This document shows, piece by piece, positions 2,360 through 44,785 of a DNA stretch of 64,000 bases; position 1 is the first letter of the stretch, and every line of letters begins with the position of its first letter. The notes beneath the pieces were generated by a model that was not told the DNA's origin, did not search any database, and saw nothing but the letters and a program-made list of their open reading frames with translations. The position numbers were made by a program, and so were the translations under genes. This stretch comes from Prasinococcaceae sp. CCMP 1430. Taxonomy: Eukaryota; Plantae; Prasinodermophyta. Location: the NCBI GenBank assembly GCA_013416795.1, contig RQSC01001240.1, forward strand, positions 7,356 to 71,355, in the 5' to 3' direction.

Positions 2360-4383
2360 CTATGAGCGTGCGTTATGACTCGGATGATGGTACTGCGGCA
2401 CCAGGAAGGAGCCGCCCATCGAGCCTGGCATGTACACAGGCATTGCGTGCGGCACGCCACCGTTGGCGCGCGCCGCGGCCATCGCCACCGATGTGGCGCT
2501 CATATGAGGGGGCACATATGGCATGGTGGACGCGGTGGCTGTGCTCGACTTTACGCCGACGCCACTGGTCGCCTCTACGGTTGTCGGCCGCCCCGTGCCT
2601 GCATGCATGCCCGCAGAAGTCTCGTGGTGCACGGCGGCGCCATCAGCACAGCTACCAGCGTGCTTCTGGCGCGCGAGAGCGGCAGAGTGCTGCTGTCGCA
2701 TGTATGCCTGAGTGTGCGCATGCGCGTGCGCTGCGTGATGCACGGCGTGCTCGGCCATGGGTGACAGCTGCGGCGGAGGCGAGGATGAGAGGCGCACCGC
2801 CTCGGCGGTTTGCATGGCGACCGCCGCGTGCGTATCGATGCCCGCCATCGCCCCCGTCGACAGCACGCGCCCGCGGCCGGGCACGTAAAAGTGACGCTGC
2901 GCCGTGGTGCGCTGCATGTGGGCCATCGGCCCGCCGGTACCACCTCCGTATGCGGAGTTCAGCGGCATCGCGTGCGCGTGATGCGGGTACAGGTGGTACG
3001 CGTGTGGTGCGTACATCTGCGCCATCGCAAAAGCATGTGGGGGTGGGTATCCTCCCATGGCCATGGAGGGCGCAGCAACATCGAACTGGCGCGCGGCGAA
3101 GCGGTCGGCGAGCGCCCCCAGAAGTTCGGCGGCGCGCGGTGACACGCACTGAGTTGACACGCTCTCCGGGGCAGCGCTGCGCGCCTGGCGCTGCAGGCCG
3201 CTTGCGTCGCCACCGTCGCCGCCAACGGAGCTCATTGACCTGTCCGTAGCAGCATCAGGTCCCGCCACGACCACCGCTTCCATCGTGACCCCAGACGCAC
3301 GGTGGAAGCGCCAGAGCTTCTCCAGGCCGTATTCAAGGTCAAACTCATCGTTCAACCTCACGGCGAGGCGCTCGAAGTGGGCATAGAACGCGTCGCGACC
3401 GGCGGAAGAGCGCGAGCACGCGGTATAGAGGAAACGAATGACCCAAGTAGCGCCATGATCGGGGCGCACGTCGCCGCTGCCGCTCGTGAGGATGTGCTGC
3501 CTCGCGAGACCCCCGTGCTGCGCCCGCTGCGCCTGCTGTGCCTTGCCCGTCTGGGCATCGGCCAGAGCCTCACGGACGAACTCGTCAAAGGCGCCTTCGA
3601 GCTGCGGGTGCATGAGGAGCAGATTGGCCCAGAACTGGTAGAGATTGAGCTTTGTAAGCGCGCGGCGCCCATGACGCGACGAGGAGGATGTTGACGGCGC
3701 CTCGGCGGCGATGGGGCCGCCGCGCTCCCACCGCGGCGCGGAAGATGCCGCCGGGCACGAAGGCGGCGACTGGGGTGCCTCGGGCGACGCGCTTCCGTCC
3801 GATGCGCTGTCACCGCGCTCCGAGCCTCGGTGGCTGTTCGCGCGGGGGCTGCGAGCATGGCCCGTGGCGACGGCCGCGGCGCCACGCTGCGCGCCCGCCT
3901 TGCACGCGGCGACGAAGGCACAGTAGACGGTATAGTCCTCCGTGGCAGCTTCGGTGGGGAGGCGATCGCCCGGCGCGCGCACACGTTCCAAGGCGGGCGC
4001 GAGCGCCGCTGCCGCCCGGCGGGTGAACAGGCAGGCGACCTGCTTCGGAGGCGAGTAGCCTCCGATGCCCGCGCGGCGGGGCCCGGCGCCGCCGTTGCTT
4101 CTCAGGCCGCCGAGCGTCGCTTCCGTGATGGGGGACGCCGCGTGAGACGCCGCGGGCGCGGATGCGGGGCGGGGGCGTGCCTCATGCGGGACAGGAGATA
4201 GAGAGGGCGAAGGGGATGCGAATGGCGAGGCGGCGTTGGGGCTTGACTCGCCACCCGTGCGCTCCGCGACCCGCGGCGGTGCGGGCGTGACGACTCTTGG
4301 CTTGGCCTCCAACACGTCGCCGCCGCGCACCTCCCCCTCGCCGCCCTCGCTGCCCGCCGCATTCGCAAATGTCCGAGTCCTCC
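2360..4383 (-). CDS. DM15 (LARP1-type cap/TOP-binding) domain protein, 3' exon; 5' end runs into the N gap
   Basis: LNLYQFWANLLLMHPQLEGAFDEFVREALADAQ and FYAHFERLAVRLNDEFDLEYGLEKLWRFH match LARP1 DM15 repeats (LFRFWSFFL...YEEFKQLALEDA; YGLEKFWAF). Candidate intron 4748 (AAG|GTGCGG) to 4384 (CTGCAG|) joins in frame to AGGRGGGAK. No La motif is visible. Confidence 0.8.
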
Positions 4384-4785
4384 CTGCAGCGCGCGCGCAC
4401 GGGCCGCAGCCACGGACAGGCCGGGGGACAGGCGGGCGGGCGGATATGCATCGCGACGCGCGCGGCGCGCCAGCATGGCGCGTGGCGCGCCAGCGTGGCA
4501 TGTGTCGCGTACAGCCTGTCAGCGGCGCGTGCTCGCGCTCGCGCGAGGGAGGTCTCTGCCTGCCGCCGCAGGCAATCGCGGGCGGCTCGAGCTCTGGGGG
4601 GCGGGCGCTGCGTCCTTTCCTCCCTCCAGGCACGGCAGTTGATCTCTTCTCTCTCTCTTTCTCGCGCGCGCGTGGCCGCGGTCGCGCCTTCGGCGGCAGC
4701 GGGCGGGCGCCCCCCCCCCCACACCGCCCACACCTCCCCCACCGCACCTTTGGCGCCGCCGCCGCGGCCTCCGGCGCGGCGCGCG

Positions 4786-4985
4786 NNNNNNNNNNNNNNN
4801 NNNNNNNNNNNNNNNNNNNNNNNNNNNNNNNNNNNNNNNNNNNNNNNNNNNNNNNNNNNNNNNNNNNNNNNNNNNNNNNNNNNNNNNNNNNNNNNNNNNN
4901 NNNNNNNNNNNNNNNNNNNNNNNNNNNNNNNNNNNNNNNNNNNNNNNNNNNNNNNNNNNNNNNNNNNNNNNNNNNNNNNNNNNNN
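4786..4985. other. Assembly gap (200 N)
   Basis: Run of N. Other gaps at 27470-27506 and 61370-61401; single N at 6051, 8126, 46613 and 59196. Confidence 1.
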
Positions 4986-5920
4986 GGCGTCGCGCGCGAG
5001 GCGCGCGGCCGCTTTGGCCTGGGCTCGGGCGGCCGCGCGCGTCTCCCGCCGCTCGGCCTCGCGCTGCAGCCGCTCCTTCTTGGCGAGCTTCTTGTCGAGG
5101 CGCGCGGTGCGCGGAGCGCCCGTGATGGTCTCCAGCACGCTCGGGCGCTCCACCGCGCTCCACGACATAGTAGGCGCGCCGCCGCGCTCGTACGCCTCGG
5201 CGACAGCCTCCGAGCCCATCGAGCTCACCCACGCGTCCCAGATCTGCACGCACGCATGCGCGTCGAGCGCGGCGTACTCCTGCTGCGCGGAGGAGAGCGG
5301 GCGATCCTCCCAGTCGGAGCACTGCTGGCGCTTGTCAAGCGGGGCGCCAAGCGTCGCTCGCGCGAGGCCGCTCAGACCGCGCGCTCGGCGCACGGCGCCG
5401 GGGGCCTGCGGGCACGAGCGAGCGAGCGAGCGAGTGTGAGCGGGTGAAATGGAGGGAGAGAGAGGTGGAGAGATGGGGAGGGAGCGAGGGAGAGGGACAG
5501 GAAGAGCGCCAGCTGCTGCGCGAGGGACACCGCAGGAGCGCGCGCTATCGCCAGCGCTGTCGCGCACCTTGGGCCCCAGCGCGCGCGCCACGCGTGCGAG
5601 GTCTACGACGCGCGTCGCCCTGAGTCCCGCGAGCGACTCCGCCCGCGGGTAGGAGCTTGCCAGCCGTCTGAGGTCGTAGCCCACCACGTAGCCGACCAGT
5701 TGCGTGTCGTCTCCCTCGAAGAGCTCCCCGATTGCCGCGCCGACCCGCTCGACGCCCTCGTCGCCCTCCTCTGCGGCGATGCGGAAGAGGTCCACGAGCA
5801 CGCACGCGTCGCGCGACGCCAGCTGGCAGAGCGCGACGGGTCGCATTGGCTCCGCACGGTCGGTCTGTGGCCGCCACTCGCAATCGAGGCCCACCATCGG
5901 CGCGCCGCGCAGCGTCGTCA
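4986..5920 (-). CDS. DEDDy 3'-5' exonuclease (WRN-exo/EXD/Mut-7-like), 5'-truncated, one intron
   Basis: ExoI VGLDCEWRP, VALCQLA, ExoII region YDLRRL, then GLSGLARATLGAPLDKRQQCSDWEDRPLSSAQQEYAALDAH (ExoIII YAALD). Intron CCCAAG|GTGCGC near 5568 to CCCGCAG| near 5406. No stop before the gap. Confidence 0.9.
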
Positions 5921-37004: not shown

Positions 37005-38619
37005 ATGGCGGCGCGCGCGCGCGCTCTGTCCCTGCTCGCCACGGCGTTCGCGGTCGCCGTCGCGGCGGCGCGTGGGGTGTTCGCCGCCACCGCCAGCGAC
37101 GGCGGCACCGGCACCGGCGGCGTCCCGCGCCAGCACATCTTCGAGGCGCCCTCCGCTCCCGACGGAAGCGATGCGCTTGCCGCGGCAGGCGCGGCTGCAC
37201 TCTCTGTGCTCGAGCGCAAGGGACCCACTGCGTGCTGGCGGCACGCGCGCGAGCGCGTGCTCGCCTCATGCCGCGAGATCGAGGCCGACGACTCGTTGCA
37301 GCGGCTCCTTGCGGTGCAGCTGACCAATTGCCACCTGGCGGAAAGCGGTCTTCCTACACACGCCTGCGAGGAAGGCGACTCCGTGCTGGCCTGCACGCGC
37401 GCGATGAAGGCCAGCAACGATTTCGACGTTTACACGCAGTTCTTCAATATGGCGACGGCGCTCTGCTACTATCTGCAGGGTGTGTGCTCGCGCGTGCCTG
37501 CAACGCTCCCTCTCAGCCCGCGCGCGTGCGACTCGCCGTGCGCAAGGCAGTACCATCAGACGAACAAACTTGTGTGCTTCGTGTATGTACGCAGTGCGCC
37601 TCTGCTGACGACCGTGAGAGCCACACGCGCCCTTAGGTGCGCTCTTCCGTGAGGCCAGCGAAGCGGCCGTGAACCAGCTGCTAGGCGCGGCCAACTCAGC
37701 TGGGCGTGTGCTCGAGGGTGTCAAGTCGGTCTCCGACCGCGCGCTTGCATACCAACAAGCCCTCGCTGGAATGGCAGATGATGTGGCCGGTGCGCAGGCG
37801 TCGCTGGTGTACGGCGCCGCCGCAGCGCTCGCCTTGGTGGCGACACAGCCGCGCTCGGCGGCTGGTGCGCGGGCACCGCTGCTTGCGACACTCCTCGCGG
37901 CCAGCGCTGTCGAAAAGCTGGTCTTCTCAGGGTTCCTGCGAAGCTACGTGTCGATAGATGCGCTGCGTGCGTGCGTGTCGGCACTGCGAGGTGCGTGGGC
38001 CGTCCTCGCCGCTGCCGTCTGGATGTACGTGATCTGGCATTTCCGCGACCCCGCAAATGAGCTTCATCTTGCAAGGCTTGCATTCGAGCGGGCGCTCGCA
38101 GATGCGCACGCGCTCAGCGGTGTGAGCCCTGTCCGCGCATGTGGTGATGAGGAGGGTTACCGAGGCCGCACAGCCGGAGGCGCGACTACGCGAAAGGGAC
38201 AAGGTGCGATGGGTGACGACCCGACACTTCAGAGGCTACTTGAGCAGAATGAAGACGAATGGTGTTGGCCTGACGATGAAGGTGCCGATGATCCTGACTA
38301 CAGCCTCACAGACAGCGAGGCTGGATGCTCGCAGTGCGTGCGCACACGCGCCTACGCGCTGCGCCCCACGCGCGCCCGCGCGAAACGCCGAGCATCGGGA
38401 TCAGCATTCGACGCTCAGGGTAGGGGCGCGAGAGAGGCACTAGAGGAGCTCGTTGGCACACTCTGCTGCGACTCAACGCCCGCGGAAGATACAGTGGACG
38501 AGACAGACACGGTAAGCAACGGGCACACACCCAATGAGCTCTCCGATGACGCTGTATCGCAGCCCGTGTCGGGAAGTGAGCGGTCATTGGAGTGGTTGAG
38601 AGGGTCCCCTCGGTGGTGA
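37005..38619 (+). CDS. GEX1: GEX1/KAR5/Brambleberry nuclear-fusion protein; intron ~37480-37636; 3' end uncertain
   Basis: Signal peptide, then the Cys-rich domain CWRHA...SC...QRLLAVQLTNCHLAESG...C...CT..M....YTQFF....LCYYLQ. Next ALFREASEAAVNQL, three hydrophobic segments, and FRDPANELHL. Confidence 0.85.
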
Positions 38620-39048
38620 CACGATGGAGGCGAGGCGTGTCCGAACCTCGCCATGCCGTCGACAGTGACAAGCAAGGCGAGGACCCCAACTGCGCCGAGC
38701 TTGCCGTGAAGGCCTGCCAAGCTCTTCCGCGACTAGAAGATAGCCCGCTTCACAAGACGACGTTTCAGGGAGATCGTAAGATCGATGCAGCACCGTGGCC
38801 GAGCTCAAAGCCTTTGGTCTTGTCGTAGGCGCGTCGGGTGAAGCCAACGTGCCAGCCTTGCGCGCCTTCAAGGGCACGGTAGAAGTTGGCACACTGTCTA
38901 GGCTCCCACGCACGCGCGTCGGCATGCAAACTTGCGCGCGCGCATTTGTGTGCCTTTGCTTTCGCGTACGAAGCAGTTGTTCACCCTGTTCAGTAAGTAG
39001 TTCTTCTTCGAAGGGTGCGATAACAGTGCGATTAAAATCTTCGTATTT

Positions 39049-40900
39049 TTATAGTCCACAATTCCATATCAATTTGCACTCAACGCGCTTTGCTCGGGTT
39101 GCGCCCGACCTGGCACGCCGCTCCGCAGGCGGATGTGCGCGCGGGTCCGCATGCCAAGCAGGTCCGGCTCCGGCGCCTCCGGCGCCTCTTGCGCCTCGGG
39201 GACGCCCGGCCGGTCGGGCACCCGCACGCCCGGCCGCTCCGGCCGCTCCGGAGATGCCTGCTGCAGAGTGGCACGAGGGAGCGTGTGGGGCGTCCGGAGA
39301 GACGAGCGTCGACTGAAGCCCGAAGCGACGACACCAGGCCATGCAGTAGCCGCGCTCTGTGGTGCGAGGCATGAGCAGGTCTTGTGGGGAGCCGAAGCGG
39401 TCTCTGTAGATGGGGTGCGCGAACGTGCGATGCATCTCGTTGTCCTTGTGCAAGACGGAGTCGAGGCGAACGCGGTCCTCCGTTGTAACGGTTGAGAGGG
39501 TGAGGAGCTCGTTCTTGATGAGTCCGTCGACGGCCTTCTGCAGGGTGTCCACACGCTGGCGTTCGACACCCTGGGCCGTGCGCACAGGTCCACCAAGGGG
39601 GACATCCGTCACCTCTTCACCAACCGGGTCAAGCAGGCGGACCCAAGCCGCTGGCCGACGGGCAAGGTCTTTCGGGTCCTTGCCGACGGCCTGCACAGTT
39701 CATCGTCGGCATGCGTTCTCCGCGCGTGCGGCGTGCACACACACGACCGCCCCAGGCGCCGCTCTCGCGGCAGCGCTGCGGGCGGATAGCTAGCTTTCAC
39801 TCATGCCCTTACTTCTTAGACACACGCGCGCTACGCAACCTCGCGCTTGCGTCTTCTCGTACTGTAATCGCAACCTTTGCAGCAGCAGGGTGTTCTGGCA
39901 GACGGCAGCCGGGATTGACATGGAAGCTGGGTCGGCATTGGCGGGAAACGGTGGAGCCAAGGTCTCGTTGTCGGTGTTGATCATGGTGTGCAGGGCCTCG
40001 TACAGGGCAGCGCCCGCGGTGTCGGGGTGGGTGAAGTACTGCCAAGCGAGGGGGTGGCGTGTGGCGAAGGGAAGGACGGAAGTCCTCGCACCAACCCACG
40101 CCGGCAGGCGAACGGTGGAAGGGGCGCGCATACCGAACCCACCCTGGGAGATGGGAAGCCCGATGTGCTTCGGGAAGATCTTCGCCAGCGACCCAGTGCG
40201 GGTCGGAGTGTCGTCTGGCGGGACCTTGCCGAGTGCGCAATCCACCGTGGCCTGGAGCAGGGCGTGGTGACGCTTCACGAGGAAGTGTGTTGGCTCAGCG
40301 TACCTGTCCTGTTCGCCCTTGCCGCCCGGGAAGAGGCCGCGCAGGAGGTAGTCGCTGATGGGGTGGACACACGTGCGGAGTACCTTGAGCGCTGCGCTGT
40401 GGTGCCCCCACGCGGAGAACTGGTTGCAGGCGGTGAGCTTGCGATAGTACACCGCGTCCTTCTTCTCGAGAGCCCCTGCCACGAAGTCCTTGGTGCCGAG
40501 CGGGAAGCCCACGACGACGACGCCTTCAACCGCCCCTGGCGCGCAGCCAGCGGTGGAGGTGCGGGGGTCGGGGGGAAGGGAGTCGAGGTAGGCGACCACC
40601 GCCTTGCCGTCGCCCACGGTGAGCAGAGCCGCATCGAGGACGCAGTTGACGTCGGCGATCTTGTTGAAGAGGTCGTGGCCGAGCGCCTCCTTGCGAGCAG
40701 CGGTGAGCCTGTCAGGGTGGACGTGCATGCGCAGCTTGCGCTGCTGGGACTTGGCGAGCGCGACCACTTTGGCGGCGCGTCCACTCGCCCCGTTGACAGA
40801 CGCGATGCCGGCGCGAAGGCCCCTCGGAGCGATGTGTAAGCAGCGAAGAGCCGACGGCACGTCCTTGCAGCGCTGCTGCTCGAAGCGTTGCTGACTGCCT
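39049..40900 (-). mobile_element. Retrotransposon ORF segment (J-domain, RT thumb, linker), interrupted by an antisense copy at 39549-39884
   Basis: EGVVVVGFPLGTKDFV, ALKVLRTCVHPISDYLLR and LPISQGGFGMR are typical post-RT motifs of CRE-like elements. Removing the insert and one TSD copy (345 bp) restores the frame: VCQNTLQKAVDGLIKNELL...EDRVRLDS. Confidence 0.85.
39549..39885 (+). mobile_element. 5'-truncated copy (end of RLE + 3' UTR) flanked by 9-bp TSD GCAGGGTGT
   Basis: TSD at 39540-39548 and 39885-39893. The insert is nearly identical to 42172-42480. Confidence 0.9.
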
Positions 40901-40959
40901 TGCGAGCCAGGGGCTTTGCCGCGAGGCCCGAGGGCCCGCTCCCCCGAGGGGGCGGGTCG

Positions 40960-41203
40960 CGTCTCCCACGGCCCCCCAGGCTCGTGCCGCTGCCCGGTCT
41001 GCCGCGAGACCAAGGCATCTGCCAAGGAGCTCCGGGACCACTGGACCGCCAAGTGCGAGCCGGTCGGCGCCCCGCCCGCAGGCTGGAAGAAGGGCGACCC
41101 GGTACCCACACGCCTCCTGCCAGACTTGGCCACGGCCTGGCGCGACCATCCGGTCTGCCGGCTCACCCAGGCTGAGAAGGAGTCTATGGGCGCTCACCAC
41201 CAG
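40960..41203 (+). CDS. C2HC zinc-finger segment, probably the inverted N-terminal part of the same element
   Basis: CPVC-x12-HWTAKC at 40991-41056. N-terminal zinc fingers are typical of RLE elements, but assignment to this element is inference. Confidence 0.5.
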
Positions 41204-41916
41204 TGCTGCAAAGGGTGCGATTACAGTACGAGAAGACGCAAGCGCGAGGTTGCGTAGCGCGCGTGTGTCTAAGAAGTAAGGGCAGGAGTGAAAGCTAGCT
41301 ATCCGCCCGCAGCGCTGCCGCGAGAGCGGCGCCTGGGGCGGTCGTGTGTGTGCACGCCGCACGCGCGGAGAACGCATGCCGACGATGAACTGTGCAGGCC
41401 GTCGGCAAGGACCCGAAAGACCTTGCCCGTCGGCCAGCGGCTTGGGTCCGCCTGCGTGACCCGGTTGGTGAAGAGGTGGCGGATGTCCCCCCTGGTGGAC
41501 CTGTGTGCACGGCCCAGGGTGTCGAACGCTAGCGTGTGGAACTGGATGCGGTGGTGCTCGCAGATCTTCGCGTAGCGCTGGACGTGGACCTTGTAGAGGT
41601 GCTCCAGGCCTGCCGCCGTGGACGGGTTCGCGCCTGCCATGTTGACCTTGGCTGACGGATCCGTGAAGGTGACGTCGAGGCAGTGTCTGTAGCCTGTGTC
41701 GGTGTCGGTGATGACTAGGTCCGAGCGCAGGTCAGTGGGCTGGCCATTTTCGTCAGTACCGAACGAGTACTCGAACGAGTTGGTGGAGCTGGGGCCGTTG
41801 GTGTGCACGTGGTAGCCGGTGCGGCGAGCGACCTTCGCGAAGTTGCGCACGAGGCGGTTGTGGCGGTAGGTGCGCTCCCCTGCTGTCGACAAGCAGACCG
41901 TGGCGTGGGCGCCGTT
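41204..41916 (-). mobile_element. 5'-truncated copy encoding the complete restriction-like endonuclease domain plus 3' UTR
   Basis: HATVC...RTYRHNRL (end of CCHC, RHN), LRSDLVI (RxD), LDVTFT (D), YKVHVQRY (K), LAFDTLG; stop TAG, then ~100-nt 3' UTR. Confidence 0.9.
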
Positions 41917-43015: not shown

Positions 43016-44785
43016 TCACTGTGCTCTAGCGGAGTACGCCGAGAGGTCGGAAGGGGGCGCCGACCACTTGACTCCTTCGGCGCGTTCCACGATTCGACCG
43101 ACATCGAGCAGCATGGCACCCTGGACCTGACCGAATGGAACCCCGGGTGTTTTGACCACGCTGCACTTGACCTTCACAATCACGCCAAAAGGTCCACTTA
43201 GGTCGGTCGCAGCGCACCAGGGCATCTCGCTCACGCTCCATGGGGTTTGGATGACTTCCTTGTGTGCTCGCAGATACGCAAGGATGTCGTCACACAGGCG
43301 CTCGACGTGATCCATCGACTCCACATCGAGGCAGATCTCGTGCTCGAAGAAGCGATTGCGCGCGGCGGTGATGTTCTTGATGCCCCCTGGGTTGTTCAGG
43401 AGTACGTGGTTCGCAATCGTGTGCGGGGTCTTGGACACGCCCGTCCTAGTGAGCAAGGTGGTGCTGGACGCTCCGATGCCGATGACGGTGCCGTGAATGT
43501 CCTTGCCGACGTGGATAGTGTCACCGACCTGGAAGATCGGGCGCGTCAGAAGAGCGATGCCAGCGATGACGTCGGCGACTGCATCTTTCACGCCAAAGGA
43601 CAGCGCCACGCCGCCGATGCCGAGGAGACCCTGTCACATGCCGCGGCGACAAAGGCGGTGCAGGGAGTTTCGCTCCCGTCAGCGCCCTCGCTGCGTTCAT
43701 TGCTGATGTCAAACCCTAACCCTAAACATGCAATTCAATACTGCGAGCATGGACATCTGTCCATCTACGCACGTGCGATGCAAGGAGGCGCCAGGCTCTT
43801 AGACGCACCCAAACAGTGCTGAGGGCAATGCCCATAGAGTTGAGAAAAACAATGGTTCCGACACAGCTCACCACTGCCTGGATGACGTTGCAATTCCTGC
43901 GAAGTAGGCGCCTGCGTCAGGACGCGCGAGGTCGAACGCAACAGCTTGCGGCACCATGATGCTGCTAGCTACCACAGCAAATGCGGAACGCTGGTGCCGA
44001 TCAACTCACGTAGAAATCCGCGGTTCCAACTTGCGCGCTTCACCTCCAACGACGGCACAGGCCGCCAGCAAGCGCCTGCGGACCCTCTTGACGACTCTCC
44101 TGGCAAACCAGGCGCATGCCACGACGTACACCGGCCAGGGAAGCTGGAAGTTGGAGACGAAGCATCCCTTCGTGCCGATGAGCGTCACGTGCAAGGTCTT
44201 CGACATCCCCGTCGCCATGAGCAGGCGCGTGAGCTCGTTGGCCACGACCAGCAGCTGAAGGGGGCCAGAGAGCGCCGCTGCGACGCTTTGGTCGTATGTG
44301 TAGCTCTCGCGAGCTCTCGTTTTGATCTTGTCCGCGAGCCGCCTGTCCGCAGAGCTGAACGCGCGCACGGGGAGGAAGTGGCCGATGAAGTCGGTGTGGA
44401 AGACGCGCTCCTGCATGTGCCAAAAGAGTCGGCAGGCACGCGGGATGGCCAAGAAGATGACAGCGCCAACGAGGGTAGGCACTAGCACCTCAGCGTGGAA
44501 TTTGGCCTCGGTCAGCCCAACGGCGCTGCGAGCATATTCAAGCGCCGCGCCGAGAAAGGTAGGCGGGGCGATCGCCTTTGCTGCCAACAGCGCGGGGCTA
44601 CTCCGACCGCGAGCATCGGTACTAGGCGTGGCATGAGCATCGTCGTCGCTTCCCGGCACACCAGAGGAGGCCTCACAGCGACGCACACCCCTCGCCTTGG
44701 CAAATTTTCGCTTGCCTCTCCGCCGCGGCCTGCGGCTGTTGTGACCCGCCGCTGCCCCTAGCGGTGCCATCGCCGCAGCAGCCAT
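43016..44785 (-). CDS. MscS-like mechanosensitive channel, multi-exon, probable organellar transit peptide
   Basis: GLLGIGGVALSFGVKDAVADVIAGI...PIFQVGDTI...GTVIGIG...TTL...IANH (TM3 and beta domain). Ala/Arg-rich N-terminus from ATG 44785. Internal exons between ~43640 and 44046 are not resolved. Confidence 0.85.

Follow-up and report, generated by a model that had tools for sequence, protein, structure and literature searches.

A family of non-long-terminal-repeat (non-LTR) retrotransposons from the alga Prasinoderma coloniale and its close environmental relatives carries a large module between domains 6 and 7 of its reverse transcriptase (RT), which, by alignment with relatives that lack it, is an in-frame, constant insertion of approximately 157 residues. 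A damaged copy of this element, marked by a His-Pro-Asp (HPD) tripeptide within the module, lies in a 64,000-nucleotide stretch of DNA from Prasinococcaceae sp. CCMP 1430 (contig RQSC01001240.1, positions 7,356 to 71,355; hereafter ‘the window’, meaning the whole of that stretch). The established novelty is a non-LTR element of the putative restriction-like endonuclease (RLE) type with a large insertion at this point of its RT. An initial annotation of the window had proposed that a J-domain, the co-chaperone module that recruits Hsp70, resides within or next to the RT of a retroelement. The location within the RT has held, in that intact members of the family carry the module in frame as a fixed component of the enzyme; the identification as an Hsp70-recruiting J-domain has not, because all tests of sequence and fold were sub-threshold or uninformative, and the Pfam match was lost on an intact variant of the open reading frame (ORF). 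On balance, and with limited assurance, we favor a functional, element-specific helical accessory domain with a superficial likeness to J-domains, a likeness that may be convergent or due to chance.

The architecture of the family could be read from relatives of the window ORF. Word-indexed and exhaustive protein searches recovered close relatives that were 60-94% identical, on short contigs of marine metagenomes (Tara Oceans and JGI), together with a few distant RT relatives, and a cluster look-up of the family protein P0001 added two long ORFs: P0145, a protein of 932 residues from EukProt (Prasinoderma_coloniale PRCOL_00006251-RA), and P0156, an ORF of 812 residues on an ENA contig. Both are uninterrupted, each running through RT domains 1-6, the module, domain 7, the thumb and the putative RLE without a stop, an order that disposes of the initial suggestion that an internal deletion had joined an N-terminal J-domain to the thumb. 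The module could be placed relative to the YxDD motif, as the initial annotation had recommended, by using the naturally open ORF of P0145, in which the RT landmarks are IRPVG at residue 15, ATQGC at 155, SIIDD (the YxDD equivalent) at 192 and GLDSDK (domain 6) at 228. Beyond domain 6 comes a long extra stretch with HPD at residue 354, then VVVGFPLG (domain 7) at 421 and a thumb with a GGFG block; the C-terminal part contains a Cys/His stretch, ERTYRHN at approximately residue 741, DLVITD at 793 and LDVTFTDPSAK at 807.

That this extra stretch is an insertion is seen most directly by comparison with P0144, a relative that lacks the module. The two proteins align by BLASTP on either side of it (E 3e-14 and 6e-11), and the matches are collinear: residues 87-197 of P0145 correspond to residues 347-457 of P0144 (through the xIDD motif), and residues 417-574 to residues 520-675 (from domain 7 into the thumb). 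Between the two matches lie 219 residues in P0145 versus 62 in P0144, which is the source of the figure of about 157 additional residues. In the distant relatives P0016 and P0022, domain 7 follows domain 6 within a few dozen residues. All family members in which these landmarks are present share one spacing, with 125 residues from domain 6 to HVHPD and 72 residues from HVHPD to domain 7.

The initial annotation had also raised the possibility that other copies might lack the module, but it is present in 13 of the 13 that cover the site (the window copy, L001, L002, L004, L006, L007, L008, L010, L011, P0145, P0146, P0155 and P0158), and the HPD tripeptide is kept in all of these except P0155, which reads HVHRD for HVHPD (residues 15-19). 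The contigs L001, L002, L004, L006, L007, L008, L010 and L011 provide independent contexts for the module; in three contigs the RT core is contiguous with it, and the two long ORFs extend over the whole. An exhaustive phmmer search of 1.84 billion representatives found no relative of the module outside the family, and a scan of metagenome contigs for it yielded one short locus only. Its distribution, comprising one RLE non-LTR family of P. coloniale and close environmental relatives, is that of a lineage-specific insertion.

The assignment of the element to the RLE non-LTR retrotransposons is a putative one, made by domain order (RT followed by RLE) and by motifs rather than by phylogeny. With the group that comprises R2, CRE/SLACS, NeSL, R4 and Hero, the family shares a single long ORF, the RT domains, the xIDD motif and a thumb with a GGFG block. 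Its C-terminal part shows a Cys/His knuckle, then RHN and a nuclease-like D...D-x-K pattern, and its copies are likewise 5'-truncated and clustered, with a zinc-finger N-terminal fragment nearby. It differs from that group by the module, which is absent from its nearest detectable relatives (P0144/P0019, P0016 and P0022). The putative endonuclease of P0145, with its Cys/His and D...D-x-K pattern visible in the sequence, has no match in Pfam or NCBIfam (the NCBIfam search returned nothing). Even the RT of P0145 matches the Pfam family RVT_1 at only 14.3 bits (E 0.034), as compared with 56 bits for the distant relative P0144/P0019 (E 4.9e-15 for P0144), so that standard annotation would miss the retrotransposons of this family.

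Copies are truncated at their 5' ends at various points (the window copy at position 40908, L011 and L004 inside the module, and L010 inside the RT), as expected from target-primed reverse transcription, and those from metagenomes are mostly dead, harboring a frameshift (L006), a TAG stop (L007 and L008), a 4-nucleotide insertion (L004) or internal deletions. Two metatranscriptomic contigs that cover the module, X17 (959 nucleotides, reaching the thumb as well) and X18 (511 nucleotides), both extend into upstream family sequence and suggest that the family is transcribed, with the qualification that DNA can occur in such libraries.

According to the interpretation that we favor, the module would constitute an accessory surface subdomain of the RT, predicted to be entirely helical and composed of a basic helix, a loop that presents HPD, and an amphipathic helix. 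The equivalent of the basic helix in P0145 (residues 333-353) carries a net charge of +6 and contains no acidic residue. AlphaFold2 models of a 131-residue and a 103-residue construct, calculated from shallow alignments of near-identical copies, are both all-helical, and in the shorter of the two the HPD loop falls between a helix at residues 34-47 and helices at residues 59-87, with shorter helices before and after. The fold prediction that the initial annotation had called for bears it out with respect to the helices and the position of HPD in a loop, but not with respect to a J fold, since the predicted local distance difference test (pLDDT) scores of 46.2 and 56.7 correspond to no confident fold of any kind. 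The modeled topology is compatible with a J-domain, yet it is common to many helical hairpins.

The first alternative, which we consider unlikely, is that the module is a true J-domain that has diverged strongly. The HPD loop and basic helix II would then dock on the host’s Hsp70 and trigger ATP hydrolysis, and the newly made RT/endonuclease polyprotein would recruit its own chaperone for folding, for assembly of the ribonucleoprotein or for target-primed reverse transcription. The features shared with the J-domain family (PF00226) are a basic helix, an HPD-containing loop and an amphipathic helix, and the local pattern that is held in common reads L-x-M-x-x-HPDR and F/L-x2-I-x5-VL.

A series of observations favors this alternative and weighs against a merely superficial likeness. 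The single Pfam match for the module, obtained with the window copy and with P0005, is to DnaJ (12.1-12.8 bits, E 0.14-0.22), and it covers profile positions 18-53 of 63, spanning helix II, HPD and helix III. Eight HPD tripeptides occur in the six-frame translation of the window, and when each was submitted to Pfam with 50 residues of flanking sequence, only that of the module was matched (DnaJ, E 0.16, 12.6 bits); the other seven gave no match. Alignment by hhalign with 41 bacterial DnaJ J-domains (a narrow set whose members share 69% identity or more with E. coli DnaJ, which makes this test less general than that of Pfam) gave a probability of 32% and a P value of 4.7e-4 over just 17 columns, KSQQRKLRMHVHPDRLT against RKAYKRLAMKYHPDRNQ; the agreement with E. 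coli DnaJ in this block involves the basic positions of helix II, the L, the M and HPDR. The residues of DnaJ that correspond to those matched in the HPD block are the ones that contact Hsp70 at the DnaJ-DnaK interface. HPD is kept in all but one of the copies, with synonymous changes inside HVHPD, and it is predicted to lie between two long helices flanked by shorter ones. DnaJ clusters also emerged from two independent look-ups based on ESM: a feature search with the window variant ranked a DnaJ cluster first (0.87, with 124 of 256 features shared, which by the calibration of the tool is only a lead), and an ESMFold model of P0156 residues 183-285 in the Atlas had a DnaJ cluster (template-modeling, TM, score 0.40) and a J-domain cluster (TM 0.44) among ten neighbor sets. 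In a structural comparison by VIA-align, the mouse J-domain 1wjz was placed at rank 11 (Z 4.8, 82 of 94 residues at 4.7 Å), a score that does not rise above the noise that the tool states for helical models. As the sub-threshold score of its own RT indicates, the proteins of this element can be expected to score low in Pfam. Finally, the role that the accessory-domain interpretation would give to the basic helix, contact with nucleic acid or with a protein partner, is one that we purely infer.

Other observations weigh against this alternative. The Pfam match falls about 15 bits under the gathering cut-off for PF00226 (12.6 versus 27.8 bits), and it is absent from P0006, P0008, P0145, P0156 and P0147, of which the open-ORF variants (P0145, P0156 and P0147) read LLDKI or LFMKI in place of LFNKI. 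The resemblance exceeds that of a bare tripeptide, yet it stays far below the Pfam cut-off. When a profile of the family was compared with 177,635 PDB sequences, no J-domain chain was found at E values up to 10, nor was a J-protein found by phmmer with the module, either in the PDB or in the exhaustive search of representatives described above. A hidden Markov model (HMM) of the 41 bacterial J-domains used with hhalign scored 8.0 bits over 19 residues of the module, the ORF of which was the top match in the six-frame translation of the window (E 0.71). In an alignment anchored on HPD, Gln occupies the position of Tyr25 of DnaJ, and Val-Asn stands where helix III of DnaJ has Ala-Tyr; the helix II aromatic (Tyr25) and the Ala-Tyr of helix III are both conserved in J-domains. 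Alignment over a full J-domain requires three indels, of approximately 17, 3 and 7 residues, the long ones being needed to accommodate helices I and IV. The ESM feature search with the P0156 variant returned nothing. Among the structural searches, which relied on models of low confidence, Foldseek with the AlphaFold2 models found nothing in the PDB below E 1.5, the best VIA-align matches among 48,161 chains (Z up to 6.0) were to unrelated helical bundles, and a shape search of the Atlas with the AlphaFold2 model of the module found no J-domain cluster; the remaining neighbor sets of the P0156 model included ABC-transporter, CorA and other helical proteins. The module lies, moreover, inside an enzyme domain and not at the N terminus, and very many windows were surveyed for surprises, so that sub-threshold DnaJ-like matches are to be expected by chance. 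All of the positive signals trace to one short feature, consisting of the basic helix, HPDR and the amphipathic helix, and the Pfam match is fragile to variation within the family. The module resembles the hairpin of helix II, HPD and helix III, with membership in the J-domain family below all thresholds as judged from sequence.

Two further candidates that emerged from these searches were rejected. The sole phmmer match in the PDB was a herpesvirus triplex protein (E 1), and the PDB profile search drew attention to a look-alike of the metallo-beta-lactamase motif HxHxDH (HVHADH against HVHPDR, E 0.42), which was set aside in view of the helical nature of the module and the absence from it of the remaining parts of that fold.

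A second alternative, quite unlikely in our estimation, holds that the module is a functionless spacer (for instance an expanded or captured sequence) that a permissive loop on the RT surface tolerates, with HPD and its flanks being coincidental. The pattern of substitution among copies bears on this in both directions. Pairwise ratios of nonsynonymous to synonymous change (pN/pS, Nei-Gojobori) were 0.34 for the RT core, 0.10-0.36 for domain 7 plus the thumb, 0.27-0.85 for the J-like stretch and 0.66 for the N-terminal part of the insertion, and constraint on the module is thus weaker than on the RT core and thumb. In ‘helix III’ there are 6 synonymous versus 22 nonsynonymous variant codons, a ratio that is compatible with neutrality, and the absence of relatives outside one young family, the Ala-rich composition driven by G+C content, and the low AlphaFold2 confidence all fit a spacer as well. 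However, its length is constant and it remains in frame in every copy, including the open ORFs of 812 and 932 residues. When variant codons in nine copies were each counted once, 28 were synonymous and 52 nonsynonymous, an overall synonymous excess against the neutral share of 0.74 (one-sided p 0.047). Conservation within the module is highest in the HPD block, the nine residues of which, KLRMHVHPD, show no amino acid change across the copies counted despite synonymous changes there. Within ‘helix III’ the hydrophobic positions (L, F/L, I/L, V, C, V, L) are kept while the polar positions are hypervariable, which points to a folded amphipathic helix. This pattern of selection, combined with constant coding, indicates that the module is a real, if weakly constrained, coding part of the element, and it is probably folded as amphipathic helices.

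The last alternative, a one-off chimera or internal deletion limited to the window copy, would account for the missing RT core there and for the scrambled element fragments that surround it over 3.8 kb, but it is refuted to the point of near certainty by the presence of the module at the same site in 13 copies from different contigs, by the three contigs with a contiguous RT core, by the ORFs of P0145 and P0156, by the comparison with P0144 and by the constant spacing.

The window copy itself is listed feature by feature in the table. The window has a G+C content of approximately 66% and contains long spurious ORFs in all frames, which meant that the reading frame needed to be confirmed from relatives. 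The string that had drawn attention to the locus, DVPSALRCLHIAP...KSQQRKLRMHVHPDRL...HDLFNKIADVNCVL...AYLD, is read on the minus strand within an ORF of 458 residues (39790-41166); HPD is encoded there, in frame, by cac-cct-gac at 40719-40711, as the initial annotation had stated, and DVPSAL begins at 40863. From AYLD, 19 residues lead in a single frame to GVVVVGFPLG (40524-40495). The initial annotation was accordingly right about this spacing, which it had put at about 20 residues, but took GVVVVGFPLG for a motif of the thumb; it is RT domain 7 (the xLGxxxG block that comes after YxDD and domain 6), and the thumb follows it.

Table. Features of the damaged retrotransposon copy and of an associated fragment in the window
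Feature	Position	Strand	Basis or remark
Retained part of the RT insertion module	40531..40908	-	ORF residues 87-212; family homology begins abruptly at 40908
J-like core, DVPSAL to AYLDSLPP	40570..40863	-	ORF residues 102-199; sub-threshold Pfam DnaJ match; four to five helices in the AlphaFold2 model
Basic ‘helix II’, GRAAKVVALAKSQQRKLRMHV	40720..40782	-	Helix predicted by AlphaFold2; hhalign match to DnaJ helix II
HPD tripeptide, in a predicted loop between two long helices	40711..40719	-	Kept in 12 of 13 copies
Amphipathic ‘helix III’, TAARKEALGHDLFNKIADVNCVLDAALL	40621..40704	-	Hydrophobic positions kept, polar positions hypervariable among copies
RT domain 7, GVVVVGFPLG	40495..40524	-	Aligns with GVVICGVPVG of the module-less relative P0019/P0144
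RT domain 7 and thumb region of the dead copy	39892..40506	-	tblastn with P0001 residues 7-211, 89% identity; BLASTP to P0019 residues 282-437, E 4e-14
Continuation of the copy, linker after the thumb	39265..39549	-	tblastn with P0001 residues 211-305; split from the thumb by a 345-bp insert
Displaced 3' fragment of a family element, putative RLE and C-terminus	41302..41916	-	tblastn with P0001 residues 310-514, 88% identity

Several lines of comparison converge on the upstream end of this copy. Matches of P0002 and P0003 by tblastn end at 40908, the DNA alignment of the copies diverges upstream of GGCTCG, and the contigs of X15, X17 and X18 continue past 40908 into sequence that encodes KLERRAAATN, as in P0145 and the longer copies. 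Position 40908 is, on these alignments, an ordinary 5' truncation point. As the initial annotation had observed, the RT core is missing, and tblastn with family proteins found none anywhere in the window. The insert that divides the thumb/linker region occupies 39540-39884, and in the contigs of X17, X18 and X9 position 39539 is followed directly by 39885. The displaced endonuclease fragment is situated upstream of the module copy, and the RNA-library contig of X17 joins 41916 to 39256, as expected of an unbroken element, and the window locus must therefore have been rearranged. What the window contains is a dead copy that has lost its 5' end and its RT core and has been rearranged, amid a pile of fragments.

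The neighborhood holds other remnants. At 40916-41206, on the plus strand and head-to-head with the truncated copy, is a fragment with zinc-finger-like Cys/His motifs (CPVC...H...C), which probably represents the N-terminal, DNA-binding portion of an element from the same or a related family; other copies run past 41206 into a second C..C...H...C motif (L001 1552-2260, and loose ends at 41206 in X9 and X15). In three metagenome contigs (L002 from approximately 1422, L007 and L008), a truncated J-like module is fused, with two different break points, to the sequence that occupies window positions 38306-38689 on the minus strand, which corresponds to residues 170-288 of P0003 and to the tail of P0008. 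This recurrent partner may represent a target site, a further repeat or polymorphism between strains at the locus.

Host sequence flanks some of the copies. The Tara contig L001 (80-298) shares a flanking host ORF with the window (43016-43609, minus strand), and its neighboring element fragments are arranged differently, which suggests an insertion or rearrangement polymorphism among natural strains. In L004, host genes lie on either side of a dead copy (3-1805 and 3120-5618); one is an ORF of 600 residues with a methyltransferase-like appearance, and the other is a large ORF, the C-terminal part of which resembles a cytosine-C5 DNA methyltransferase and which includes a chromodomain-like stretch.

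Literature searches found no retrotransposon described as encoding a J-domain or DnaJ domain. The P protein of hepadnaviruses is an RT that needs Hsp90, Hsc70 and Hsp40 for activity; these chaperones are recruited in trans, and the polymerase carries no J-domain. It nonetheless offers a conceptual precedent for an RT that depends on the Hsp70 system. In the large T antigen of polyomaviruses, an N-terminal J-domain is fused to the replication protein of a selfish element, just as the algal module is. That the algal retrotransposon has a working J-domain in its own RT, with each new polyprotein recruiting and firing the host’s Hsp70 on itself, is in our judgment improbable. Were it true, a retrotransposon would for the first time be seen to encode a module that recruits chaperones, a counterpart in a eukaryotic element to the J-domain of T antigen; the retrotransposon would hijack the Hsp70 cycle by its own means, and transposon activity would be linked to the heat-shock system. 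If the module is not a J-domain, it serves as a warning that, where the genome is rich in G+C, an HPD tripeptide together with a basic helix can pass for a J-domain at a score of about 12 bits, and what is left is an uncharacterized RT accessory domain from a deep-branching green alga that has been little studied. Non-LTR elements rarely, to our knowledge, carry large insertions within their catalytic RT, and such insertions mark the gain of an extra activity or partner by the element.

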